Origin: Ascoidea asiatica JCM 7603
Taxonomy: Eukaryota > Fungi > Ascomycota
DNA length: 64,000 nucleotides
NCBI GenBank assembly: GCA_001600695.1
Contig: BCKQ01000001.1
Coordinates: 8,423 to 72,422, forward strand
Direction of reading: 5' to 3'
Positions 1-20,000 of the stretch are shown piece after piece. How positions within the stretch are numbered: the first letter of the stretch is position 1; each line of letters begins with the position of its first letter. The position numbers and the translations under genes are program-made. Under the pieces are notes generated by a model. That model worked only from the letters and a program-made list of their open reading frames with translations. It did no database searches and was not told where the DNA came from.

Positions 1-1298
1 CAAACCTATATAAATATGTCTGTTTTTGTCTACATTTTTTTTTTTAATTTTATATAGTCTTGAAATTATCGACTTTTATATTTACTATTTTACATATATT
101 AATACATAATATTTATTATTAATATATTTATAATATTGACCTCATTTTTCATTATCGTTGGTAATTTTTAGACTAAAACAACTTAATTTATTCCATTATT
201 TCTCAAGAATCCCAACATATTCTAAGACAACTAGGTTTTGGGTAAAACTCTGTTTAACACTATTGGGCTAAAAATGTTTTTAAGTTGCCCTTTTTAAATA
301 CCTCCCCTTCTTATTCTAGTTACTATAATGTAACCGTTATAAGGTAGTGCATTGCTTCTGGAAGAAACCAGAATATTTCAAGACGCTAAATAATACTATC
401 ATCCTGATTTCGTTCTCAGTCCCAACTTTTATTTTAAACCTACTTTATGATACTTCACTATCCTAATAAAGTTAATCTTTACAGTCTTTTTTTGTTTGTA
501 CTCACAGCGCGCCCCGTTCTATGTCTTAAGTCAAGAAATTTTCTATTGTCCAATATCTTGCCAAACCTCACCGTGTAATGTCCAATTCCAGTAATATCTG
601 GGCATATCCAGAAGATTACTAGTGTTCGACTAGTATATATTCATGAGTCCTAGGAAATAGGAAAAAGCTTAGTATGACCCGTTATTGTTAAGAATGGGTC
701 AGTAATTTACGTTGGAACGCAAATTTGTTCTGACAGGTCCCCAGCTGTTCCCATAGTAGCAGAAAACGTAAACTGTCTAGAGTTTATAATAATAGAACTT
801 GAATTCTAGGTGAAATTTTCATGTATATATAGGCCACCATATACACTACTTTAGTGTCAAGTTGGCCATTTAATTCAAGTTTGTCATCAAATGACTTCCA
901 ATAGCTCGCGGGATTTCGTTTTTTGTCCTCCACTCTTTTTCTATAAATTTTGATCTTGCTATCTGAACATATCATTATGCATCCCTTTATATACAAGATT
1001 TCTCGGAGCTATATCCACATGTGCCTCCAGTAGAAATACGTGTATTTCCATGGAACCCCAGCTGGTAAGGTTAGTACCGCCGATTATTATGGTAATCATG
1101 ATATAGGTATCCGGACAGTGCAACTATCTATTGACGGATTTATAGTTCTAACTCGTACTGCTTTAAAAGCCATCACGGGACCTGCACCTGTAGCAGATAT
1201 CCTGACTACACTCAGGAAAGTTCTCCTGTGAATGGTAAGCAGAAATTCGATCAACAAACTGCTTTTAATATATATGTTCCTTAATAAATTTCATAACT

Positions 1299-1860
1299 TG
1301 ACATAATATATTAAAAAAATATTTGACGTAATTAATATATATAAAATAAATATATTTTTCTGTTAAGAAAGAAAAAGAAAAATATGAAGGAGATAAAGAA
1401 AAGAAAGCTATTTAAGTTAAATTAGCAAAGCTGGAACGAACTTTCAAAACAGCAGCAGATTGTAATCGAGCGCACAATTGCCAAAGTAGTTGAGCAAGTA
1501 CAAAGTTTTCAGACAGGTGAAAAGTTTTCAATGAAGTGAAAATTTTTCATGGGAGGAAACACAAAAAGCATTTACATCCCCGTGCCACCCAGGTGACCAC
1601 GGAAACATGTGACTTGAGAAAAACCAATCAACGCAAATAATTAGAACGGTCACAGTAGAGCCCTGGCACATGATAAATATTAGGGTTCGCAAACAGTAAA
1701 GGAAAGAGAAAAAGAGAGAACAAGTAATTGTGTGATAACAGTCTTAAGTAAAACAGAACTAATTGAAGTAGAAAGCAAAGGTAAACGGAAGCGAGTAATT
1801 GATGAAATAGATTAATAACTGATTATGACCCACCAAATGAGGGAGAATCTCTGATGATCA
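1299..1860 (-). repeat. Left inverted LTR-like arm
   Basis: Reverse complement of ~5494-6062, roughly 85-90% identical by eye, with a ~60-bp perfect run (acctgggtggcacggggatgtaaatgc...cacttca). Confidence 0.9.
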
Positions 1861-4800
1861 AAGACCCACTTAATACTGGTTTATCAATCTTGCAAATTCA
1901 AGAAGAAGTCAATCTAGTAGATTCCTCTTCCAATGCAAACTTTGTCTTGGATACTGGTGCTTCAACTCATGTTGTCAACTCAATGGAGTTTCTTGCAGAC
2001 CAAAGAGAATCAAACACTTTGGTGAAAGGGATCAATGGACGCGAGATATGCAAAACTGAAGGTACTGTTAAAATTGGATGTCTTCAACTCAATGATGTGA
2101 AGTTGTTACCCAATGCTGCTAGAAATATCATTTCCATGGGAAAGCTATCAGAAAGCGGTTACAAAATTGAAATTAAGGACAAATTGGGTTCAATTTATCA
2201 TCAAGGGAAGCTTATATTTGAAACAGTTATGTAAAACTATTTGTGGCATTTGGACCCCAATGATGTTTGTACTGAAATGGTGTTTAATGCTGATACTTCT
2301 ACAACTACTGATTCAGGTGCTCAAACTGCCGTTTGCGATGAAATTCTTCAATTTCTCTAAAACAATGGACATTGCTCATTTAACCAATTCAAGTCGTTAA
2401 AACAATCTGCTTAAGTCAAATACCTCGATAATGACATTCATGCTGCTTTGAAGAGATGTGAAGCTTGTGTTTCAATTGTACCTAAAAGTACAATTAGAAA
2501 GACAAAAGAAGCTAAACACTTGGTTACTGGTGAATATATCGTTGCTGATCTAATTGGTCCCATTAACAACTCTTATGGGTTGATTGTAACTGAAGCTAAT
2601 GCGCACTTTGTTGTTGCTCATGTTCTTACTTCTAAGTCTCAAGCTACTGACAACTAATTGAATCTCTCAGGATTTTCGAGAAGCTGCTTTCCTTGACCAA
2701 CAAATCACTTTGTTTTGTGAAAACTGATAATGAGTTCAAAACAAATGCATTCAAAGCATTTTGTTCTGCAAATGGTATTATTCATGACGCGACTGCTCCT
2801 TATTCATCTTATCAGAATGGAAAGTCTGAAAACATGAATCGTCAAATACAACACAAGTTCAAACAGTTGCTTGCCGATTCTAATATTCCTGATACTTATT
2901 GGAATTTTGGTTTCCATCATGCTGATTTTTTTCACAATTACTTGCCCTTGAATTTAAATGGACAATCTCCTTGGGAGATGCTCAGAGAAATCAAGAAAAC
3001 TGCTACTGTTACTGCTCCCTTTGGATGTCATATCTATGGCTTTAATCATAGTGTTAGGCAACAGGGTTTCAAGAAAGACGTTTCTGGAACGTTCTTTGGC
3101 TTCAATAAAACTAATAAGATTGCTTTTATTCTAAAAAATGGAACCGGTGAAATAGTCAGATCCAGTTCATTTAGGTGCTTAACTGATGTTTATCCATTCA
3201 AGTTAAACAATCATGTTGTTGTTACTGACACTGATGTCCAACCGATTTCTTTTGGTGGTTCTTCTGCCTCTTTCTCAGCTGCTTCTAATAAAGATTTTAA
3301 CACTTCTGCCACTGAAAATACTGTTGAAGTTAGACCTTCTAGTAATGATGCTGCTGACATTAATATGAATGATAACAATGAAAGTCAACAAAGTCAAGAA
3401 GATACTCAAGATGTTTCTCTTGATGAGACTAGTGCTCCACCTGAAATGCAGGAGGATTGCTTAAATGACACATCGAATTGCAGTATTTCAAGTGATTCAC
3501 TTCAATCGGCTGTTGAATCAACTACTCCTTCTATTATCAAATCAACTCCATCTTTAATTTCCAATTCTGGTGTTATTACTCCCCCCAGAAGAATTAGGTT
3601 TCGGGTTGCAAAAGCTTGTAATCGAGTTTACAACATGAAACTAAGACCCAAAAGACATGTTTCGTTGCAAATGAAAAATAACCTCAATTTGCTTTCAAAC
3701 AGCAGTAATAATTCAAATCCTGTTTATTCAACTCCCTGATGAAGATGCATCTGATCACGAAGCTTATTCTCAAAAAGCTATCGAAGGTCCAAAAGATGTT
3801 GTTTCTATGTCTGAAAACACCTCTGATAATGAAATCAATCTTCTTGTTTCCAAATCAAAATACAAGATTCCTAACTACTTTTCAGAAGTGTTACAATCAC
3901 CTGCAAAGAACAAATGGTTAGAAAGCATTGAGAATGAGATGAACTCCAGTCGTTGTAACAATGTGTATGATTTAGTGAAAAAGAATGTTGTTGATGAAGC
4001 TATCATCAAAAACAGATGGGTTTTCAATGTTAAACAAGAAACAGATAACTCAAAACGGTTTAAAGTTAGATTAGTTGCGAAAGATTATTTGCAACAACTT
4101 GGTGAAAACTACATCGATATCTATGCTCCAGTGATGAAGTTTGATACTTTGAGATTGATCTTGCCCTAGCTGCAATTAAAGGTTATTCTTTGTGCCAAAT
4201 GGATGCTAAAACTGCTTTTCTCAATGGAAAGATAGATTATCCAGTTTTCTTTCAACCTCCTCCAGGAACTGGTACTCCTTCAGAATATGTCTGGAAACTC
4301 AAGAAAGGACTCTATGGAGTAAAACACGCTCCTCACATCTGGTTTAATACAATTAGAAAGGTGGTAATGAAAAGTGGTGATTTTGAACAAAGTGTGCTAG
4401 ATCCTTGTTTGTTTTACAACAAAAGCTGTTACATCTCAAACTACGTTGATGATATTCTCATTGCAGGTGATACTTCGTCTGATATTAAAGTTGGAAAAGA
4501 TTTACTCAATGATGCTTTTGTGATGAAAGATATGGGTTCTCCTGCTGTGTTCCTTGGAATTAACATCAATAAATTTCAAATGGATACTCCAACTCGCTAA
4601 ATGACTTTATAACCAAAATCGAAAATGATTTTGAAGTTAAACAGCTCAAAGAGCTCAGAACTCCATTAGCTAAAGGTTTTGAACCATCTGATTCTACTTC
4701 AAAATTTCTAACTGAAGAAGAACATTCAAAATACAGATCAGTCATTCGAACTCTCTTATTCAAGGCTAACACTGTTAGACCTGATATCTCATTTGCTACT

Positions 4801-5455
4801 TCAATGGTAAGTCGATATCTGGTTACTCCCAGAAAATCTCATTTGAGTGCTGCATTCAGGATATTGCAGTATGTTGTTCGAACTAAGAACTTCTCTTTAA
4901 CTTATGTTACAGATCAGAACCTCATCAAATATGCTGATTTCCGTTACATGGATAAAAGTGACAATGCTAAGATTCAAGACTATCCTAAACAAACAGCTTG
5001 AAAATTAACTGTTGTTAGTGATTCTGACTTTGCAAGCGATAAAGAAACTAGACACAGCCAAAGTGGCTATTTCACATTATTGAATGGAAATATCATTTCA
5101 TGGTCTTCTAGAAAACAATCGTTGATTGCTCTCTCGTCAACTGAAGCTGAATATATTGGACTTACTGAAGCGATGAAAAGTGGATTGTACTTCAAGAATG
5201 TTTTAGCTGAAATCAAATGCCACTGTTCCTTTATCAACCTTCTTGGTGATAATTTCTCTTCTTTAACTCTTGCTGCTCATTTTTATATTCACAACAAGTC
5301 TGTGCACGTTGATATCAAATATTATTTCATTAGACATAATGTTACAAGTTGATAAAACTTAACTATGTAAACCCTAAGATGAATATTGCAGACATGCTTA
5401 CCACGCTCGTTGATACAACTACATTTCAAAGCTTGGTTCAATCTGTTTTTCATTA
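1854..5455 (+). pseudogene. Copia pol polyprotein (protease, integrase, reverse transcriptase, RNase H), with frameshifts and stops
   Basis: Protease LDTGAS. Integrase CEAC, ADLIGP, KTDNEF, QNGKSE. RT RWVF..K..RFKVRLVAK, MDAKTAFLNG, LYGVKHAP, YVDDILI. RNaseH SDSDFA, SSTEAEY, NIADMLT. Confidence 0.92.
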
Positions 5456-5493
5456 ATCAATTTCAATTATCAATACTTTTACAATTATCAAAA

Positions 5494-6062
5494 GATCATG
5501 TTATTCTCTTTTGAAGGGGACTAATAAATTATTGATCTACTTTATCAATTACTTGCTTCAGTTTACCTTTGCTTTCTACTTCAATTACTTCTGTTTTACT
5601 TAAGACTGTTAACACTCAATTACTTGTTTTCTGTTTTTCTCTTTCTTTTACTTTCTGCTAAGCCTAATATTTATCGTGTGCCAGGGCTCCACTGTGACCG
5701 TCCTAATTATTTGCATTGTTTGGTTTTTCTCGGATCACATGTTTGCGTGGTTACCTGGGTGGCACGGGGATGTAAATGCTTTTTGTGTTTCCTCCCATGA
5801 AAAATTTTCACTTCAATAAAAACTTTTCACCTGTCTGAAAACTTTGCAATTCCTCAAGTATGATCACATATGTTTGCTCTATTGCAATCTGCTGCTGTTT
5901 TGCAAATTTCTTTCCAGCGTTTCCAATTTAGCATAAATAGCTTTCTTTTACTGTTTTATTTTCTTTATCTCTTTTATATTTTTCTTTTTCCTTCTTTACA
6001 GAAAAATATTTTTATTTTATAAATATTAATAACCACAATTATTTATCTAATATATTTTTACA
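5494..6062 (+). repeat. 3' LTR / right inverted arm, with a PPT (GAAGGGGA, 5513-5520) at its inner end
   Basis: Follows RNase H, has a polypurine tract at its inner end and ends ...TTTTACA. Inverted copy at 1299-1860. Confidence 0.9.
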
Positions 6063-6264
6063 AGCTAAAAATTTTATTACCTAGTCCTGGAATAAATGCT
6101 AATATTACGACCAAGAGCATCCTATATAACCCTACGATCTGATGGTACAATAATCCACACGTCTCACTGGGTGAGCATCTGATCTCATAAAGTTTCCATG
6201 CAACTCGGAAATGTAAATCAGATCTCAAAAAGTATTTTTTGATGTTCATATGGTCACTTATAGA

Positions 6265-7647
6265 CAGTCCCTTCCAAAAATTTGAACCCATTTTGATTTT
6301 AAAGACGGGTTTTATTTTATTTTTTTTTTTTTATTTTCAATTCTAGGCTTTGGAAACAATTAATAAATGCCAAATTTGATTAAATTATATAAAAATAGAG
6401 ATCGAAATCTGTAGAATATGAATATGTAAAAAAAATAATAAAAAAGATACGAATAAAAAAATATTTCCTAGCAGGGAATGGAGCCTCCTTTTTGCTGCAA
6501 GACCGTTTTCAGTCTTCTGGGCATAGAACAAATTAGGTTCTCCACGACACTATTCGGAATCTTTTCCCAGCAGTGTTTAATTGCCTCTCGACGATTTGGC
6601 TGGCGAGCTTTGCGGGGTTTTAGAGAGGAGTGAAGGTAAGGAAATTCCTTTACCAGATTGCCCTTCAAAATTGACCACACATTTTCAATCGGATTGAGGT
6701 CTGTTAAGTTTGCGGGCCACTCCAACACCAACAACACTTTGGAATTAAATAATTCTTTTGATTAGGACGTATGTATCGGGGAATTAACCTGGCAATTGAT
6801 CACGTGATCGATACTTTCCAAACTTGAATTAATGTAAGGAAAAAGATTGTCTTGTAAGCAATTCTGATGGGCAAGGGAATCGGTAGACCTTCCCTGCTCG
6901 AATTGATGTAATTCTCCCAAACTTTTCAAGGAGAAGACGCCCCACATCATCTGCATTACCCTCTTTTGGGCTCAAATGTTTCAGAATATGTGGCAGAGGT
7001 TTTTTTCTTCTTTTAATATGAACCCAGACCTTTGCCCTGAGCAACAGGTACGACTGATGGAACTTTCATCGGACCAAACCACCGTTCCCGGATTCTCAGG
7101 GGTCCAATTTTGATCTTTCCTAGCAAACAGCATCTACCCTTTCTGCTGAGCATCATTTAAGAAGGGTTTGTCTCCTTCTTTTATCTTAAAAAGTCTCATT
7201 TCTTGAAAAACTTTTCTGTTTGTATTCAATCAGGGCCCGGTAGTTCACCCCAGGAAATGCTTCTTTTTGCCAAAACATCTCGCTTTAGAACCCTGTACTC
7301 ACGATCTGTTATCAACTTGGGTCTTCCTCTAATTTTAGGACGTGTAACTTGCAGTTTATGTCTTTTAATAATTGTTTTACCCGATTCAACTTTGATCAGA
7401 AGCTTATGGGCAATGTAAGAGGGCTATTTATTCTCCTCATAGTAAAGGACAATAAGAATTCCTTTTCCTACTTTATCTATATTTTTAGATTTCGTACACA
7501 TTGCTGATTAAGATAAACTACTTTTTATGATGTTTATGAACTATATACACTACATACTGGATCCTTTAATAATTATTTTATACTGTTATTTCAAGAATTT
7601 TAACAACCCCGATTTTAAAACGGGTTCAAATTTGTTGGAAGGCACTG
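6265..7647 (-). mobile_element. Tc1/mariner (IS630-Tc1) DNA transposon, decayed
   Basis: ~28-bp TIRs: CAGTCCCTTCCAAAAATTTGAACCC and rc CAGTGCCTTCCAACAAATTTGAACCC. TA on the right flank, GA on the left. Transposase motifs WSDES, MMWGVFS, QVNSPIH, WPANLTDLNPIENVW. Confidence 0.9.
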
Positions 7648-7856
7648 TATAATCCGTTTCCCAAAACAAAGCAGTTCAGAAATTGAAGCTATTAAATGCC
7701 TAATAATTTGAAATAGTTGTGGTATCAGATTTATTGGCTGTGATGAAATAACCCTCCATGGCCAATTAAATTGGAATTGTCAATCAAAAGGAAACAAAAG
7801 AAAATTAAAACAATGCTTTTGATCATTCGAACAATAAAAATATAAATATAGATATA

Positions 7857-9242
7857 CAGTCAAAGTGGATAAATTTCCTTTCGTTTTGAAACTGCGGGAA
7901 ATGTTTTGTTAAATTTGTAAAATAAAATAAAACTATTCTATTGAATTATATAAACTATTTAGTAAATAAATGAATAAAATTCGATTCCAAAGTAAAATAC
8001 GATGAATCAGAAATCTCACAATACCAGTAAAGTGGTGAAGCTGATTTCTCTTCATCTTTATTTTGAAGAAAATAAGAAACGTAGGTATATTGCCGATAAA
8101 TTACAGACCAAGCTTCCTAAAGATCATAATTTAGAGGTATAAGAACGCTCCAGAGGCCCAAAAGATAAGAGGAAGTTCAGAAAAATTGACGCCTCATGAC
8201 TGTAGAACATTGAAAAGAGAACTTCTTACAAATTGTGGTCTTTTCTGGAGGGATGTAACAGGTGAGGGATGTCTAAATACAACAAAAGGCCATTTTAAAA
8301 ATGGGAATAAAAAAAGTAAAAAAAATATCAAAACCCTTTTTGGGTGATGCTCACAGAAAAGCCACAGTCGCTTCTGCTAAAAAGTATTAGGAAATGGCTC
8401 TTGAAGATGGGGGATAGCTGATTTTCTCAGATGAAAGTTCAATAAGCAGTGTGGGGGGCTGAGGACCGGATTATGGTTTCGTTTTAATGGGTGCAACAGA
8501 CCTAAAACATCGGGTTAAAGAGGTACGCGTTCAGAGGGAGGGGAGGGTACCCCTGATGGTTTGGTATGTTTTTGAACTAAAGGATTGGCAGAATTACATC
8601 AATTTCAAGCTCGTAGAGCTGCGAATTCCATTTCGTATCAAAATTGTTTAGAGAAAAACCTTTTTCCTTATATTTCGGCCAATTTTGCTAATAATAAGCG
8701 GGTGATTTTGTGGCAGGTTAATTCCCCAATTCACAAATCGAAATCGACCAAAGAATATTTCAATTTGAAGGGTTTGAGGGTGCTTATCTGGTCAACCAAT
8801 TCCCGAGATCTCAACCCGCTTGAAATTCTTTGGGCCAGTTAGGGTAAAACTTTCCAGGCAGTACCAAAAGCTCCACAGGTCCATTCAATCAAATAACTTA
8901 ACCACACAAGGGCTTGAAAAGGCCATTAATCAAGGCTGGAAAGCAATTTTCAAAAATTCAATCCCAAACATTATTCATTCTATGACTAAAAATTACAAAT
9001 GGTTTTCGATCCCAAAGGAAGGTCCATTCCGTATTAGGAAATTTTTGTAAATTTCTTTAATTTTTTTTACGTTTTTTTACTGATTATACTCTTCGTTTCT
9101 TTCCCAAGGTTTAAATGTTTTTTATTTTCAATTTCAAAAGATTATTTATTGAAAAAAATCGATTTAAAAAAAAGTCAAAGTCAATATATTTGAAATCCGC
9201 TGTTTAAAATTCAAACGGATTCAAATTTATTGAATTTGACTG
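7857..9242 (+). mobile_element. Tc1/mariner DNA transposon, decayed (second copy, opposite orientation)
   Basis: TA|CAGTCAAAGTGGATAAATTT ... AAATTTATTGAATTTGACTG|TA. Motifs FSDES, MVW, QVNSPIH, WSTNSRDLNPLEILW. Length 1386 bp versus 1383 bp for the first copy. Confidence 0.9.
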
Positions 9243-9899
9243 TATATCTGAACAAATAATTCAAATCATTAATACCGACGGGTGCAAATAAACTTGACAG
9301 GATAAAATGTCAAGATAATCTTTAGATTCAAGAGACAACTATGGTAATTCCTGAATCCATAACCGTCTAAATTTTGGGAACATTTTATTACGGAATCAAA
9401 AACATTTGCATTTAAAAAATGTACGGCTTTTAACTTTAAAAGTCGTAGAGAAACCTCGAAGTCATCTGCATCTCTATCACAAATTTCTACTGTAGCTTTA
9501 CAAGATTCCATATATGATCCGATTTTGTACTTTCTTGAGATAAGAGAAGCAAGAACTAAGACCCTTTTTTCATGACGAGCATCATCAAGGGTGGTCTATT
9601 TACCAGCCATCGCATTTAGCACCGGAAGTAGGTGGGTAAAATCATGTTTAGTGTAACTAATTTGAAGGTTTATCGGCAACCCGGTTGATGTCTTAGATTC
9701 TCGTCAAATGGTTTGTAATATCCAAACAACGGGAGGTTTTGAAGCTCCGTTGATCTTCTGCAATTAAAATCTATGGCTATAATCTGTTGATATTCTAACT
9801 GTTAGTTATGTTGCGACCCCAAATCTCATATTATATACAACCTGTATGATACTATATGACGTAACTTTTTTGATGTTAAGAACTTTTAGAAGCACAAAT

Positions 9900-12800
9900 A
9901 GATAATAATATACTTTTGATTTTGAGCAAAGTATTTGTCTTTTTGTTTAATTTTCAATTTTTTATAACAGAGATAAATCAGTGTGACATAGAAATAGGAA
10001 ACTGGCGGGTTTTGAGTTTGTGTAATACCATACCTGTTAGAACATTGCTAACATCCAAAGTTAATAAATCACATGTCAGCAATCCAACGCTAACGAAATT
10101 AGACATTTTTTATACAGAACAACGACGACGGTATAAAGATGTGGGCTGGTGTGTTTACCGGAATAATATAAAGCGGTTTTCTACCATGCGTGTAAAGAAA
10201 TTCGGGACTATTATTGGACGCAGTTCCATCCCGTGTAAGCTGATTCATTGTTAACTATTGATTTCACAACCAGGGACCAATTCAGCGGGCATTGCCAATG
10301 CTTTTCGATATTGTTTTATTAACTGATTTAATCCTCTATTGTAACCTGTTAAAAGCAAACCTTAGAACAGGAAGATTAATTCATAATATAGCGGTTTCAG
10401 GCACTACAAACATTCCAACAACTATTAACCTTAGTTCTTATTGCGGTTTACATAGTTTGCTGCAGCCGATTGGTTCTCTTACTGAGCTAGAATATATATT
10501 CCCGACGCGTGTCATAATTAAATACGGCAGATCAAACATGAATCTAGTTTGAAAAAGGCCAACAAATCGAAGTTAGTTTTGATTGTCAAAGAGAATAATA
10601 GATATAACATTTAGTGTTGTTAAGTTAACTATATAATATTTATAATAGACAAGCCTAAGAGAATGATACCTGCATCCTGAACATTCCATAAATGCTCAAT
10701 TATTCAACAAAATGATTGTATTGCTTCCCTGTTTTGTCAAGTTCCAAGTCCGGCAGCGCGGTGGATTCTTCGGCCAATGAATGGCTGTTACAACCCTTCT
10801 TTAAACTGCAATTAATTTAATAGCTGCATCAGAGTCTAATCACTGACGGGCAACCCTCCTGATAATTGCAACTGGTTCATTCAGTCGTGTTTGATTTTCG
10901 AGCACCTAAAAGAGAGATTCAAGGATGTTAGCTGGGATTGTAACAAAACGTACAACTACCAGCCCTATTACCCGCTAACACCGTCTCATCATGCGTTAGT
11001 AGAGCATTATGGGGGTTATATAGCAACTAATATTTGCGACCCCTTTTTCTTCTCAAGTGTTACAGAAAAATTCATTATGTGAACAGCTGTCTAAGAAGAG
11101 GAGAAGGTAAAATAAATTCTTTGAAAGTTAGCAAGCTTTTTTTTTTTAAATATCTCAATAAATATAATTTTCTTTTTTATTAGTTGATATAGATCATCTT
11201 CTTTTAAAATCTCACACAAATATAGAGATTTAATGTCTGAATAAGGATCTAGCACCGTGTGGTAAGTATCGGCTTAAAGCAACCGAAAGACAAAACCTCT
11301 CTGCGTAGTAGACCTTTTTAGGAATCAGTCGGCCATGAACGCCAGTAGACCTGTGAATACGGTGCCGAGCTATGGTTCTCCTATATAAGCATTTCGAAGG
11401 AACGTCATGGTATATCATCTTGCAGAATACTTAGCATGCTTGAGTAAAATTAGAATTGAGCCGCTCATAGATAAGGTTAATTTGTTTAACGCTTAAGCGA
11501 CAATATGTCAGTCCTATAAGTAAATTAGGACAGTCTGTGTGTTAAATTGCGGAATAGAATTTTCGAGACAACTAGAATTTTCAATAGCAAAGTGTGATGA
11601 GAGGTCAACTTTAGATATTGAGGAGAGCAACCAATAAGATACTAATCCCTGAGTACTATTTTGTGGCTCAATAACAGCACTAGTAAAACGATGACCATTA
11701 TAATCTTTTAAAACCAAGATTGTAAGTGTCTTTTTATACCTCATCTTACCGGGAGTGCTTTGCATTAAGACGAATTTCCTAAGCTTCATTTTTTGCAGAG
11801 AGTGATGTATTCTAAAAACATAGCTTTCTTGGATCTAGCTCTGATGTGTGGATTTGGTTAAACCTTCCATAGGTTTTTGATTGTGAGTATTTGAATCTGA
11901 AACCCTATTAAACCCGGAGGAGGTTTAACTATCCTTCACCACGACAGAGGTATTTATTATTTAACCTCAGGTGAAACACGCGTCACCCAAGGAGTTGTAA
12001 ATCCTTCCCGAGAGAACTGGCAGCTATGTTTTTACTTCAATTTCTGAATAAGATATTGAACCTTCCTTTTCTAGAATGTGCCGATAAACGTACAGCAATG
12101 TTTGAGATAGCTGTTTTTATTTGGTGGACTGCGTTTTTCGGTTTATTTTTAACCGCCCTTAAATCATTAAATTTTACTGCGAATTTGGAAGCCAAGTTGA
12201 AAGATATTTCGTTATCCGAGCACTTAAATTGTGTTTTACTTCAATTGGAAAGTTTTCCTTTGTATCCACCTTCAAAAGGGCCCCTTTAGTAGAAAGATTA
12301 TTTTGAACAACCAGACATGGCTGTTAAATATAGAAGGCCACACGTTTTATGGTTTCCATACAATAGATGTTCTTGTCTAATCGTTCTTTTAAATGAAAAA
12401 CCAAATTTCGATTCGCCGCAACAATTGTAAGGAACCGCCTAAGACCTTGCCCATAAATACAAATCTTCCAATATAGTTCTTTTAGATTGCTTACTTAACT
12501 AATTAAATAACAACAATGAAGAGTTAATCAAGTACCAATTCTGAACTAGAAGGGTAGTTTAAATAGTATATGAGAATTTCGGTGAAGAATTTAATTCCAC
12601 AAATCTCTATAACAAATATTGAGATTCGGCTATTCAAGAAAAATAAAGTTCCTCTTTTTTGCGCTTACTCAGCTTCTATAGGTGTTTCTGAGTCTTTATG
12701 AAAACACTGGCTACTTTCAAACGTTTGGCAGCTAAGTTTTATTTTCACCGAAAGAATTGAACTTTTAACCATGAAGACAATAAGAACCCAACCATTACTT

Positions 12801-13700
12801 AACGCTCAACTCACAATGGTGTTAGTTTAAACTAAAATGTACGGGTAAGACAAAATCATAAATTCCTTAAGTGTTATGTTTTGTAGGAAGTTTCTTGGTG
12901 GAAGCAACCTGCGTTCAAGAATGCAGGTACGATAAGAAACATAACCAATGGTAATTTATTAGTTGAACTCATATGTAACTTCTATTGATTTGTCCAACCT
13001 GTTCTGCACAATAATAATAATAATAATATTAATCATTAACTCAAGTAAATGGCTTGTATAATAATTCCTTGTAATCTAATGTGTTCAACTACAATTGTAG
13101 TATTTTACTTAAACTGATAGTACTTTCTATTTAAAATATTCTACAAAACAAGGTTCACAATATACATTTAAAATCGTAGACTAATTTGGACGCTTTCCGC
13201 TATCACAATAGAATTCTGAAGATTTTACTGTAAAATTTACTCCCAGACTACCAACAAGCACATATATTGGACTGCAAGTCAATTGAAGTCTATTATCGCA
13301 ACTAATTGCGTGGCTATCAATCTGGGTATCCGGCACAGACTTTTCTCAGCAAGGGAGCAACATTAGTAACGGAACCCGTATTCCATCCACTCGTGAAAAA
13401 GCAGGCAGAGGTGATTTTCAATCATTTTGTTATTTTATTAGAATTCTAATGGAATTTTCTACGCTATTATTAGAGTTTTTAAGATTGCATAGATTATTCT
13501 ACGAGTACATTCGGTTACGTTTCAGAACTTACATGTGCATCGAAGATGTACGAGAACGTTCGTCGTCAACATTTTTTATTTTTTCGTTGAATTTGGGTGT
13601 GTGTACTCGAATCTTCTTGCCTGTTCTCCCAATCAGGTAGACTCTTATAGATCAGAACCTTATTTTACTTATTTTCTTAAGTATGGGAAGGGAACTTTCA
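9900..13700 (-). mobile_element. Highly degenerate L1-clade non-LTR retrotransposon (LINE) remnant
   Basis: Minus-strand fragments in L1 ORF2 order. APE-like IVAANRNLV..KERLD (~12380-12440, cf. GDFN..DR). RT-like NG..STQG and IYL (~11520-11700). LSMSGSILILLKH (~11430-11480, cf. LS..GR..L.K). C-terminal NTPAHIF (~10135-10155). Boundaries and ORF1 uncertain. Confidence 0.45.
10615..11220. mobile_element. Probable solo LTR inside the LINE remnant
   Basis: Begins TGTTGT and ends ACACAAA. Flanks TTTAG (10610-10614) and TATAG (11221-11225) match at 4/5 as a TSD. Confidence 0.4.
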
Positions 13701-14539
13701 CGTACTAAATTTAAAAATTTGTTCTTAAGATAAGTTAGCCGCTCCTATTGTTCACTAATATAAATAGGTCATTACCACCCTTATTTTTCACATAGTTTTT
13801 ATATATATTATAATTTAATTAACACTTTGTTACAATTTAAATTGGATAAATTTTTAGAAACAATTAGATATTTCGGTCGAACTAGAACCATACTTATTAC
13901 AAAATGTGGAATATGGCTTCCCTACTACGCATAACTATTGTCTTATTTTTTAATGATTTCTATCTTCCAAGGTTAAAGCGAACACGACTTGAATTCTCTT
14001 ATTATTATACTAAAAAGAGAGGTATCTGGAAAAGTGATTAACCCTTTAACATTTAATTCCCTCCTATGTTATTTGAAATATTTGTGGCCTTTATGGAATG
14101 GTTCTGAGCTTTATGGTGAATTGGGTTAATTAGCTACTAGTAATGATTTAATCCTCGTTGAGTTATCTCAGAGTTTGAGATGCTAGTCTTCTCTTCATTT
14201 CAAGTTAAAAAATAATACAAATTTTATATTGTAGCCAAGGGTCAACACAATAAAAGAATTTACTAATATAATTTCTTTAATAATAATTTTTATTTTAAAT
14301 TATTTATGTTACTAATTTTTCTACTTATAATTTTTATTACTTATCTTCGCTTATATTTAAAAATTCAACTATTAATTTAAAAACAAGTTAAAAACAAAGG
14401 ACCAAAAAAGAAAAAGAAACAATTAACCCCACAAAAAAAAAAAAAAAAACAATAATTAAAAAAGACGAAAATCAACAACAAAATCATATACTTTTATTAT
14501 TTTTATATGTTCAATTAATATCAAAAGCAGATCATTTCC

Positions 14540-16440
14540 TATGCTTATATGGAAATGACTGAAACTGCTAACGCTTTGGCAAAAAAATTTTAAAACCACA
14601 ATACATTAAATGAACTCGAATTCAACAAAATGGATAAACAAATGGCATTAATTTGTGAATCAGTCAAAAAATTAAGCTCTGCTGTTAGTGAAAGACTAAA
14701 AAATCCAAATTCAAATACTATTGAATATAGTGAGCATTTTGATGATTTAAGCTCTGGCATTGTTCATCAATTACCTGATCTGCACATTATTAACGATGTG
14801 GTTAAATCAACTGAATCTTGTTTATCCAAAACAACAAATGGAAATGATGCTGCTATTGAAGTTAAACGTGAACAAGAAGATAATTCTGCTTCAACAAAAA
14901 TTAACACTACTGCTGCTACAAATATCGCTGCTCATTCAAATGCCGATAAGACTAATGATGCTAAACTTACCAGATTTCTGGTAATTGACGACAAAACCAA
15001 AACAGATAGTTTTAAGTGACAAGCTATACCATCCACTGTTGGCCAAGTTGAAGGGCTTTCACAAGGTTTTCAAAAACCCAAACAGAGTAATCCGAACTTA
15101 TTCAGTGAGCTGAATGACGCTAACACCTGGAGATATGATGTAAATCGAAGTACATCCGATGAAATAAAGATTATGTTTGCTGCAGGGTACAACACAAAGG
15201 TCAAAATTGGTTTACTTTGGTCTGGTATGGCAAGAAACAGAGGTATCTCTGATATTGGCTTGGATGCTACTGCCAATACATCAAAATTAAAACAATATGC
15301 TATTAGTGAAGGTTGACCCTGGTGGAAATAATAGATATCTATATATACTAGGGCATATATTGGTAGTAACACCATAGCTTGTGAAGGTCTACAACACACC
15401 TATCTACAGTAGACGTAAAAGAGTTAAGTATTATACAATAATGTGTGTACACTATGTATAGTTATGCGTAGACATGCATGATTAGGCTTAAGTATACATT
15501 TGCATAAAGGTGCATTAAGTTGCATGCAGAATATATCAATTCACGTTACTTTGCATGACTCTGTGCGCACGTACACAGACAATCAGATATCATGTTATAT
15601 TCCAGTCACATGACATAGGTCATATATGCTAACGTCAGGCATAGGGTACAAACTAGAAAAGACCTAGTGATTGCTACAAGGCAAAGTGGTAGAACATTTA
15701 AGAGCATACTGAAGGCAAGCCACTCGGTACAAGGAGAAAAAAACAGCAGTGACGATTTAGCGTCTATCGGGATAGAAGTTGAATTCGAATAGCCAAACGG
15801 ATCCATGCAGGGACTCCTTCTGGATGGTTGAACTGGATAACCGTAGTTTCATGCGACAAAGGGTATAGTTCTCAGTGCGTACACGGAATTGTCTCAGAAT
15901 AAAAAGGAGACTAGTGAACCAGGTCGGGTATGAATCTAGTCAGAGTCCGGGCTTTGGTATTTAAAATAATTCCTGGGAATTAGTTTTTTTGACTACCCCG
16001 CTGGAAAGTGGACTGATTGGTTTTTGTCTCATAAATTGAAATGGGAATTTCAATTGAGGTCTCATCAAGTTTCCAACACTTTTTTATAAGGTAAACTTGG
16101 TCCCCCCCCCCAGATTCTACGTAGCAATCCTGGGACCGTTGGGAATTCCCTTGAATTCTTGATCGTTCTCCGGGACCCTGTAGGAATCCAGAAATAATAT
16201 AAGAGGAACCGATTTGCTCTTATTTTTTGAATAAAATTTATTTATTTTTCTGTTTAGTTCATCGATTAGCATGAGTTAATTGATTAATACATAGTTTGTA
16301 AGTACGTAAAATTCGTATATTCGATTTTGTAAAATGAATGAAAATTCACAACACAACTCATTGATTCCCTTCTATATGGAGTTGTCAAAGCACTTTCCTA
16401 GTATTAAAAACTTCATGAACAAAACATATAATATCTTTTA
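14540..16440 (+). pseudogene. Disrupted ORF with a GCR1_C-like C-terminal domain (Gcr1/Msn1/Hot1/Crypton-type), split by a solo LTR
   Basis: Reading through TGA at 15017 gives FK*QAIPSTVGQV...SELNDANTWR...YNTKVKI...ARNRGIS...KLKQY. After the insert (~16355) it resumes as NSLIPFYMELSKHF. The pattern resembles GCR1_C by eye. Confidence 0.45.
15320..16353. mobile_element. Probable ~1.03-kb solo LTR
   Basis: GC-richer non-coding block with TGGTGGAAAT...AATTCACAACA ends that interrupts the ORF above. TSD not preserved. Confidence 0.5.
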
Positions 16441-17049
16441 AGGTAAACTAAACTTTCTACAAAGATATCAAGGAATTATTATCAATAATGATGAAAAGAA
16501 AAAACAAAAAACAAAAATTACAAACTGATTAACAAAAGAGGTATAAACGTGTAGGCCGTTTTTTTGATACTTATTGTTTCTAATTAAATTAATAGAAAAG
16601 GAAGCGTTTTTATTAGTTCATTATTTTTCAAAAAATAAAAGATTATAATATATTAATTTAAATAAAACCAAAGATTATAATTCAATTTTGACTACAAGTA
16701 TAATATATTTTTCAAGTTCATATTCAATATCAAAAGTAAATGCAAATTAAAAATTGTAATGTAGAATAGTTTTGCACCATTGATACAATCAAAATCAAAT
16801 ATTTCTAGTTTAACAAAATACGTTTTAAATTCATGTTAATTAAAAATTAATTTTAATCTGATTTTTCTATCTTGATTACACATTCGTATTAAAATCACTA
16901 AAATCAATTTCTTCACAGCTTCATTGGAACTCAAATAAAGGAAAGTTTATAACTGTACAAATATGTTCTCTTATTTGTATTTCCCTTATATTTCTGTTTT
17001 GTCGTTGAGGGTACCAACGGCTTAAGCACTGATATTTTACTTCAATTAT

Positions 17050-20000
17050 ATTTCGTCAATGCATTTAACTACAATACATGCTTGGGAAAATGTGGATTAC
17101 GTTTACAGCCAAACGCATTAGCCTCATCGCATTCATAATCAGCTGCAAAAACTTCAAATCACAATAATCTATCTGACTCTTCTAGTTTTGCTAGCACAAG
17201 AACAACTGATCATACTAATTATTTTAATCATATACCTTCTAGAACTCCTACAAGCTTCAGAATTTTGAGTTCCGGATTTCAAGGTGCTATTGATGTTGGT
17301 GCTTCAGACCGTATTCAACATACCTTGATCGAACAAGAGATCAATTTTCTATTCAAAAAGAAGAACTTGAATATGCAATGCAAGGGGGTAATGATCTATC
17401 GTAGTTCGTACAATTTCCTTTACCTATCAACATCAATTTAATTTTGCGAGAATTCGTTCACTTATTATTTGCTGATGACATTGCAACAACTGTTTATTAT
17501 TTTAAGCACCTTGATAAAGCATTCTCGTCAACATTTCGTGATATTTTTCCCAGAACACAAGGAAACTTTTAAAGGAAAACATCCTGCTCTGAAATTTGGA
17601 ACTAACTAAAGACGATATTTCCCGAGGCTAATATCACTGCAACTGCCCTTCAAGACTTATCGGATTGCATGTTGAAAAAGATATAAACTTTCTTCAAATA
17701 AGGCAAACACTTCATGATGGATCCAAAGACTTTGATAAAGCTTTTACAGATCCTACTACAGCATGTGTACCGATGTATGTAATTATCAGAATCAAACATG
17801 AATGTTCAAGTTTCGCAGGATCGGAAAACAGGTTAAAAGATATTTGCTGCAATTTCATGACAATGAAAAAGGTCTTAAATTTGAATCAATTATTACCATG
17901 ATTAACCATAAGCATGACAACATACGCCAACATAATAATAATGCTAAACCCAATGTTGTTATTTTTGGGTAAAAAAAGACCTAACACTCATGTTTGTAAT
18001 ACTGTTAATCATAAACAATCCACAAAAAATAATGATTCTCCTAGTTGAAGTGAACCTAATGATAAGATCAAAAACAATTTCAAAGACTCTACACATTATT
18101 GTCCTGGTTGTGAAGCCAAACATCAGTTTGGGTAACACATTAACGACAATCATCTAATAATTCAAATAAACTTCTTAATGTTAAAACTGAGGCGTCTTCT
18201 ACCAACAATAATATCAATAACAATACCAATTCAAATTCTCAGAATAATAGTAATCAAAGATATTCTGGTTTACAAAATCTTAATTCAAAACCAGATTATA
18301 ATAGTAAACACCAATACATACAAATATAATGCATATAGTTCTGAAACTCTATCATCGACTACTTCATTTTCTGAGAGAAAGAACTGTTTGAGTCTTTCAA
18401 ATATTAATAATACTCCTCATCCTATCTTATGTTATACGGGGGTTAACATCCCTGTTACCAGTGATAGAACTTTATTTGAAAAGTTTACAGCTTGTCAAGT
18501 AGTCATTAAAGGAGTTGGTGAAACTGCAGAGTACAGTAAAGGAACTGCTAGCATGAGTATCAAGTTTCCTCATAACTCCTCACAAGATGTAAAAGCTACG
18601 CTCACTGAATATGGCCGAACGCTAATCAGTTTTGGTGCTTTTGGCGACTCACACTTTCAATTACTTGATGCTAAACTTTCATGCAATGAGTTCATCTTAG
18701 GTCGTATGGAAAATGGACTTCTTATTCGGGAAAATATAAAAATTATTAAACAAAATGCAGCAAATAAGTTTGCTTCTCATTTTAACAATTCTGAACCACA
18801 TTTACTTAGAGAAAAATCAAATAACTATTCAAGTCGATCATACGCTGTTGAGGATTCATATGCTATATAGCATAATGACGATTAGAGTTTTGTCATAAAA
18901 TCAGTCAAACGAGTCTGAATGAAGAATATCTAGGTATTCCAGAAGAAAAATTACTTAAGTAACCCTATTCATTAGGTGCATCTGCTTCCGCAACGCTTAA
19001 GCTACAATATAAATGAACCGAGCATGAACAATTCAAAATTGAACTATGTCGAATCTGCAACTTAATTTATCAGAAAATTAATTCGGATTCTACAACTTCT
19101 CTACATAGTTAATAGTCAGCAAGCTCCAATTTTAGATATTTAGATATCACCCGACAAAACTATGGCAAATACCAAGTTATGTCCATCGATCATTACAGTA
19201 GATTCCCAGCAGCATTCGGTGCGAATCACAAGGCTTCTGTTAGCCCTGAGATGGATCAATTTATTTCAGAATGGTGCAATAGATCAAATGTAGCTGAACC
19301 TAAATTTAAAATTGAAAATAGAACAGAACACAAAAAATCTGAATACAATACAATGGTTGGACTAGCGGACGGATATGCATCTGTTGATAGTAGTAGATCT
19401 GAGTCAGGTATCAGTAAAGTTAAATCTATGACATCAAAAATTTTATCTCATGATCCCTCTGATTATCATGAAGATTTAATTAATAAAGTTACAGAATTTG
19501 TTTGTATTTTACAAAACATGCAAACGCACTCGCGAACCGATGAGATTCCTTTACTTGTTTACTTGTATTTTATGAGCGGCATCGAAAGAAGCTTACCTTT
19601 CCCCTATTTTTATGAGATGTGATATATAGATATAGTGCAAACAGTTTGGAAAATGACATATTTCGTTGAGATAATGAGTACTCATGTACTTAAAAAGTTG
19701 TTAAAGGACCAATAAGCATTAGTTTGATTCAATTGCAACTGTTACAGATATTAGCGAACTTGATTCTTTTAATGTTGATAACTAACGTTTATCACATATT
19801 GGGAAAGCTACGTATCCTGATTCGCAATTTGAATATATCAAACACTTGTTTGTCGACCAAGTACAATTGAAGCAAAACTTTACTACAATAATATTTATTC
19901 CTAACATAAATTCTTTCCCTTATGAAATTCAGATTTGGAAATTAATTTATCTGATTATGAGTTTATTTTAGATCTTATGCGCCTGCCATCCAAAATCATT

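Follow-up and report, generated by a model that had tools for sequence, protein, structure and literature searches.

The stretch analyzed here (the window) comprises 64,000 nucleotides of Ascoidea asiatica JCM 7603, i.e., C1:8423-72422 of a 20.3-Mb assembly in 71 contigs, and it contains close to its left end, at 1282-6079, the pol region of a Ty1/copia retrotransposon enclosed by two long terminal repeats (LTRs) of opposite orientation. The explanation that we favor, at a confidence that is about evenly balanced, is that of a dead composite, in which two copies of one Ty1/copia family in a transposon nest were combined by nested insertion and subsequent LTR-LTR recombination. This nested reading is supported by the heavy nesting nearby, by the divergence of the two arms, by LTR joints that are exact to the terminal base and by the missing target-site duplication (TSD). 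Nothing in the structure is functional, and it does not constitute a transposable unit.

A preliminary description of the window had noticed an inverted long repeat bounding a Ty1/copia pol, and this was confirmed by a repeat finder (1439-1841 paired with 5506-5908 at 87%, 1282-1406 paired with 5955-6079 at 84%) and by Pfam, which detected Pol_BBD and RVT_2 between the arms. The copy of the family on contig C12 (L023:3400-9945) was used as a ruler for coordinates only, and the LTR termini were set by BLAST to the LTR of this copy and by alignment of the ends across 12 other LTR copies. All 12 begin with TAATAAATTATT and end with AAATTTATTA; in the 3′ LTRs of the family this start comes directly after the polypurine tract (PPT) GAAGGGGAC, and in the 5′ LTRs the end is followed by the conserved sequence GATTTCCAATC. 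All LTR copies of the family have the termini TAATAAA...TTTATTA, a 7-bp terminal inverted repeat, so the LTRs end in TA...TA instead of the canonical TG...CA. In the window, these 7-bp termini are found at 1282-1288, 1819-1825, 5522-5528, and 6073-6079. The left arm (1282-1825, minus strand) is a complete reversed LTR, corresponding in BLAST to the C12-copy LTR as 1825-1282, with the end of its unique 5′ part (U5) at 1282 toward the flank and the first base of its unique 3′ part (U3) at 1825 toward pol. The right arm (5522-6079, plus strand) is a complete LTR in normal orientation and constitutes the 3′ LTR of a truncated copy. The same LTR end, U5, is thereby exposed on both sides, as had been recognized earlier. 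The arm bounds given at that time (1299 to about 1860 and about 5500 to 6062) needed correction, and the TG...CA ends with the flanks AACT/AGCT were found to be LTR-internal, located 17 bp inside the true ends.

The internal region (1826-5521, plus strand) consists of the final 28 nt of the gag frame and of pol. It corresponds in BLAST to positions 2340-6042 of the C12 copy, to which it is 92.7% identical from position 2340 on, and the alignment continues into the 3′ LTR. Within the region, Pfam identified the protease barrel Pol_BBD at 1854-2231 (E 5.9e-9) and the copia-type reverse transcriptase RVT_2 at 3807-4597 (E 2.9e-28 and 1.1e-13); the integrase region at about 2448-3739 was located from its position and from rve-bearing homologues (P0008), the integrase core of the window being below Pfam significance, and the RNase H region lies at about 4800-5350, all of these on the plus strand. 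The domain order is hence protease, integrase, reverse transcriptase and RNase H (PR-IN-RT-RH). The PPT region (5509-5521, plus strand; TTTTGAAGGGGAC) adjoins the right LTR, in agreement with the earlier observation, and it is kept upstream of every 3′ or internal LTR start. The pol between the arms has decayed into at least seven open reading frame (ORF) pieces, and a Pfam scan of seven of the larger interior ORFs returned only Pol_BBD and RVT_2 and no tyrosine recombinase. It was also correctly noted before that the left arm passes into the protease frame with neither gag nor a primer-binding site (PBS) in between: homology to the full-length copies is found only from 1826 on, 28 nt upstream of the pol ATG, and a PBS-gag segment of about 1.14 kb, positions 1204-2339 of the C12 copy, is missing.

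Searches of the own genome returned 22 LTR matches and 12 internal matches of this family. Its full-length members have direct LTRs of about 550 bp; canonical copies with forward LTR, PBS-side sequence, CCHC gag and pol are located on C12, on C7 and its near-duplicate C47, on C16 and, twice, on C43. At five or more loci other than the window such copies carry GATTTCCAATC after the LTR and the segment of about 1.14 kb with the CCHC knuckle. The assignment to Ty1/copia follows from the copia-type reverse transcriptase RVT_2 (E 3.2e-52 in the C12 copy) and from the protease and integrase regions ahead of it. The closest database protein is 43% identical, and the sole named match is a hypothetical protein of Saccharomycopsis crataegensis. 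The family is undescribed and otherwise canonical. The window copy deviates from its canonical members by the inverted left LTR, the lack of PBS and gag, the mismatched flanks and the split pol.

The inner joint at 1825/1826 connects the terminal U3 base of the inverted LTR to position 2340 of the C12 copy, with no bases added or lost. The preliminary description had proposed a BLAST search of the arm, the pol and the joint against the own genome, and this found other copies with direct LTRs and gag and no second occurrence of the joint in the 20.3-Mb assembly, a 141-nt probe matching other copies from 1826 or 1827 only. Such an outcome had been named there as refuting a new architecture. The same type of joint, i.e., the U3 terminus of an inverted LTR joined to pol, was found on C23 and C43. 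On the C12 copy the three joints are at positions 2340 (window), 2900 (C23), and 4035 (C43); their ambiguity is 0-1 nt at all three loci, and at each of them the other LTR end abuts non-copia DNA. As the joints are exact at the LTR terminus, they point to strand transfer by the integrase as the event that made them. A joint hot spot at an internal polypurine tract was considered and rejected, since only two of the three joints are followed by purine runs, at a distance of about 70 nt.

Over their whole length the arms share 87.1% identity, and 85.4% if one patch is set aside; neither arm is closer to the other than to unrelated copies (81.0% to 89.9%). Private substitutions account for 5.0% of the left arm (1282-1825) and 5.7% of the right arm (5522-6079), i.e., 27 and 32 changes, and for 2.44% of the 3.7-kb interior. 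Given this interior rate, arms identical at formation should today share about 95% identity. The LTR pair of the canonical C12 copy, at 94.6% identity, does fit the interior rate of that copy (2.25%). The divergence of the window arms beyond the expectation for a single complementary DNA (cDNA) argues for two different source copies, and outside the patch the arms behave as independent LTR lineages derived from these two copies. The patch became apparent in the sliding identity along the arms, for which the column-majority string of the LTR alignment was the yardstick; it pairs 1511-1595 of the left arm with 5752-5836 of the right arm at 96.5% identity and is probably a gene-conversion tract between the nearby inverted arms. 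Seven states are exclusive to the two arms and could have spoken for an origin as sister LTRs; this origin was rejected, as six of the seven fall into the patch of about 85 bp (clustering P about 0.001) and are read as gene conversion.

At the outer ends, no TSD was found: the true flanks are TTCCT on the left and CCTAG on the right, with the trinucleotide CCT as sole overlap, and the near-match TSD reported before was not retained. The only testable solo LTR of the family, on C15, suggests a TSD of 5 bp with four of five positions matching. The left flank (1-1281) is not copia and has no recognizable domain, Pfam being blank on all its open stretches of at least 40 amino acids and tblastn with gypsy pols of the own genome giving no match there, and its part at 500-1281 is single-copy DNA that matches only itself in the own-genome DNA search. 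The right flank is single-copy over 184 bp (6080-6263), own-genome homology beginning only at 6264. A minus-strand gypsy pol had been thought to run across the site, and this was not borne out. Pfam detected no gypsy domain on any open stretch of both flanks, genome-wide scans with the gypsy domains Integrase_H2C2 (PF17921) and RT_RNaseH (PF17917) gave no match in window 1-10,000, and the best tblastn hit of four gypsy pols of the own genome (E = 0.18) lies inside the copia integrase. Removal of the unit in silico, by which the gypsy pol was supposed to be rejoined, produced no long open frame spanning the site. A gypsy landing pad was thus rejected; the relics found to the right carry DDE_3 of Tc1/mariner type. 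No transfer RNA gene is present within window 1-20,000 that would indicate targeting of such genes. The lack of a TSD and of detectable gypsy sequence in the flanks, together with arms too diverged for one cDNA, speaks against the earlier claim that the structure was inserted as one unit.

In the explanation that we favor, copy X would be represented by 1826-6079, comprising the 28 nt before the pol ATG, pol, PPT and 3′ LTR, and copy Y solely by the complete inverted LTR at 1282-1825. Y would have been inserted via integrase into the chromosomal copy X in opposite orientation. Homologous LTR-LTR recombination would later have collapsed Y to one LTR and/or swapped it with an upstream LTR of the same orientation, thereby deleting the interior of Y together with the 5′ LTR, PBS and gag of X, and a short gene conversion would afterwards have copied about 85 bp between the inverted arms. 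We infer the order and nature of these deletions from what is present today: a deletion by LTR recombination would explain both the position of the left-arm U5 end beside unrelated DNA and the lack of a TSD. A one-off rearrangement, either by autointegration or from a head-to-head pair with deletion, had been offered earlier as one of two possibilities, and it is this kind of event that is favored here, with the same joint type recurring at two other loci.

Several observations weigh against this explanation. The other half of X, from the 5′ LTR through PBS and gag to about position 2339, is found neither beside the inverted LTR nor in C1:1-38,422, which forces the assumption of one or more additional recombinations involving a third LTR. 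The outer side of the inverted LTR borders unrelated single-copy DNA with no duplicated 5-bp target, and not the remainder of a host copy as in a nested insertion. Simple nesting also predicts both types of joint, while none of the located LTR copies showed a U5 end joined to the copia interior; the chance of such one-sidedness is roughly 0.06-0.25, a value that depends on the assumptions made. Furthermore, the inverted and direct LTRs on C43 are 98% identical, as predicted by an origin from a single cDNA, and none of the Logan contigs listed bridges 1825/1826.

Some of these observations are better accommodated if the structure is the chromosomal fossil of an opposite-strand autointegration or of a snap-back reverse-transcription product, which we consider a possible origin of rather low probability. 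In the autointegration route, the U3 end of the cDNA would attack its own plus strand inside the element, by which the LTR becomes inverted relative to pol with U5 ends on both sides; the molecule would then be captured in a chromosome and its duplicated inverted part lost by LTR-LTR recombination. In the window an LTR terminus is indeed joined exactly to an internal site on the opposite strand, and U3-exact inverted joints at differing internal sites of three loci, the occurrence of one joint type only and the two intact outer U5 ends abutting non-copia DNA all agree with this route. Inversion circles, in which one LTR is contiguous with an inverted or truncated portion of the element, were documented for Ty1 and for the copia element SISYPHUS of Arabidopsis (Lee et al., 2020; PMC7197481), and the autointegration or 'suicide' products of Ty1 are attributed in PMC7197481 to Garfinkel et al. 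(2006). Like the window structure, these products show an LTR terminus joined precisely, in inverted orientation, to an internal site and a truncated interior between LTRs. They are, in contrast, extrachromosomal circles that originate from one cDNA and keep the inverted remainder, whereas the window structure is chromosomal, the remainder is absent and the arms, at 85-87% identity instead of the about 95% expected from one cDNA and with few, clustered shared derived states, are too diverged. The inverted PBS-gag segment of an inversion circle was not found in C1:1-38,422, where the DNA of the family's gag is absent and the only gag-like match (C1:4044-4439; 33-37% amino acid identity) derives from a different family. 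The autointegration route also leaves no account of the missing TSD, and as the products are described as dead-end circles, a way of capture has to be invented. The 98% identity of the C43 arms was down-weighted as support for a single cDNA because 10 kb of this contig contain 327 ambiguous bases and the LTR and its flank reappear after a 100-N gap; the repeats of this region (L024, L038; C43:1-20000) have been collapsed or scaffolded redundantly.

Extended to all three exact joints, the idea would be that each is a captured autointegration or snap-back cDNA fossil and that this is a recurrent route to pol-only units with inverted termini of about 550 bp, a generalization that has only a small chance of being correct. 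If it holds, units with two integrase-competent U5 ends would be the expected first step from an LTR retrotransposon to an integrase-driven DNA transposon, and if the recurrence does stem from autointegration, the loci would provide rare genomic evidence of 'suicide' products fixed in chromosomes.

An integrase-free rearrangement, in which two head-to-head copies, or a copy beside an inverted solo LTR, underwent an end-joining deletion or a replication error at the edge of the LTR, appears unlikely. The surroundings do consist of nested, decayed repeats, and the family does undergo such deletions: in the C13 copy, gag was lost by plain deletion of C12-copy positions 1208-2296, with a microhomology of 2 nt (L026:5086-5150). 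Random deletion is nevertheless very unlikely to place the breakpoint on the terminal base of an LTR, with 0-1 nt of ambiguity, at three independent loci.

Improbable, too, is an assembly error at 1825/1826 in the repeat-rich end of the contig. Contig C1 begins about 10 kb before the unit, and many family copies are located at contig breaks. The interior is mostly covered by multi-copy Logan contigs of other copies, which break at 1826 into the canonical gag sequence and which explain the depth in the joint bin in runs X1 and X2, and a look-up of the exact protein of the protease ORF, as an independent assembly of the joint, gave no record. What speaks for the inner joint is thus only the assembly itself together with the argument that assemblers mis-join within shared repeats and do not connect the last base of an LTR to an unrelated internal position. 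In contrast, both outer junctions are real, since 1000-1357 and 5961-6303 are matched without a single difference by Logan contigs from three runs, which belong to two independent studies; 5786-5980 is likewise covered with 0 differences in two studies. Further points against a misassembly are the absence of ambiguous bases from the window, an arm identity of 87% instead of a perfect fold-back, and the same joint type on the clean contig C23.

The proposal of an undescribed copia architecture, namely a gag-less unit that has long inverted termini and is mobile as a whole through its DDE integrase or thanks to gag provided in trans, could draw on the start of the unit 28 nt before the pol ATG, which keeps the whole pol frame, and on the identical U5 ends exposed on both sides, yet it is very improbable, since canonical copies with direct LTRs and gag exist, the joint is single and the inverted loci on C23 and C43 are joined at other positions, the flanks are not collinear gypsy sequence, no TSD is present, the arms are only 85-87% identical, pol is in at least seven pieces and the promoter of the inverted LTR would face away from pol.

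Compared to known systems, the family resembles the Ty1/copia elements (Pseudoviridae) of budding yeasts in its RVT_2 reverse transcriptase, copia protease barrel, PR-IN-RT-RH order and PPT, and its full-length copies have direct LTRs of about 550 bp and a CCHC gag. It differs in the TA...TA termini, and the window copy differs in that 5′ LTR, PBS and gag are replaced by an inverted LTR. Nested LTR insertions with solo-LTR formation, ectopic recombination and gene conversion share with the window structure the context of a nest, the precise terminus, the discordant TSD and the converted tract; in the window, in contrast, the other half of the host copy is missing and the nesting itself is inferred. 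Enzyme genes of retroelement type between long inverted termini are otherwise a feature of DIRS retroelements and of integrase-derived DNA transposons such as Ginger. Unlike these, the window structure has no tyrosine recombinase, no family of identical units and no TSD, and its arm is an ordinary LTR of a direct-LTR family. As it stands, the structure is ordinary transposon debris, and for inverted LTR pairs in nests the true termini, the family context and the arm divergence need to be checked before a new kind of element is put forward. Points of interest are the undescribed TA...TA family, its clusters at contig ends and the integrase-precise inverted joint at three loci.

Family copies were found on C1, C3, C7, C8, C12, C13, C15, C16, C23, C43, and C47. 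All of them are no more than about 40 kb away from a contig end and sit amid transposon clusters, which suggests targeted integration into heterochromatin, centromeres or subtelomeres, where the assembly breaks. The C13 copy, whose 5′ LTR is direct, lacks PBS and gag except for 4 nt of the PBS side and constitutes a second, independent gag-less derivative. The copies on C7 and C47 (L025:3732-4404 and L032:601-1202) have a common 5′ flank and LTRs that are 98.2% identical; either the locus has been duplicated or the small contig is redundant.

At 1852-1856 of the window (plus strand), the sequence TGATG overlaps the stop codon TGA of the gag frame with the ATG of pol, and the same overlap is present in the C7 copy (L025:5565-5569). 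At this overlap pol of the family is in a different frame from gag, and the arrangement of the two frames suggests that reinitiation or frameshifting at TGATG may serve pol expression.

To the right of the unit, a decayed Tc1/mariner-type transposon with a DDE_3 remnant lies at 6264-7650 (minus strand; 81% DNA match to C11) and a second such relic with DDE_3 in opposite orientation at about 7850-9246 (plus strand). Their DDE_3 matches (E 6.7e-4 and 5.9e-5) are under the Pfam cut-off, yet have a DLNPIE-type motif. The two relics are diverged and stand head to head, with relatives on C11, C12, and C3. Another element of about 530 bp, termed 'Z' here, is present at L023:3883-4412 (in the C12 5′ LTR), L025:7451-7662, L028:99-312, L024:2924-3151, and L035:4471-5170 and is probably the LTR of a second copia-like family. 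At four loci it is inserted in the LTR or pol of the copia family, which illustrates how common nesting is here. Upstream of the window, the gag-like frame at C1:4044-4439 adjoins a copy of 'Z'.

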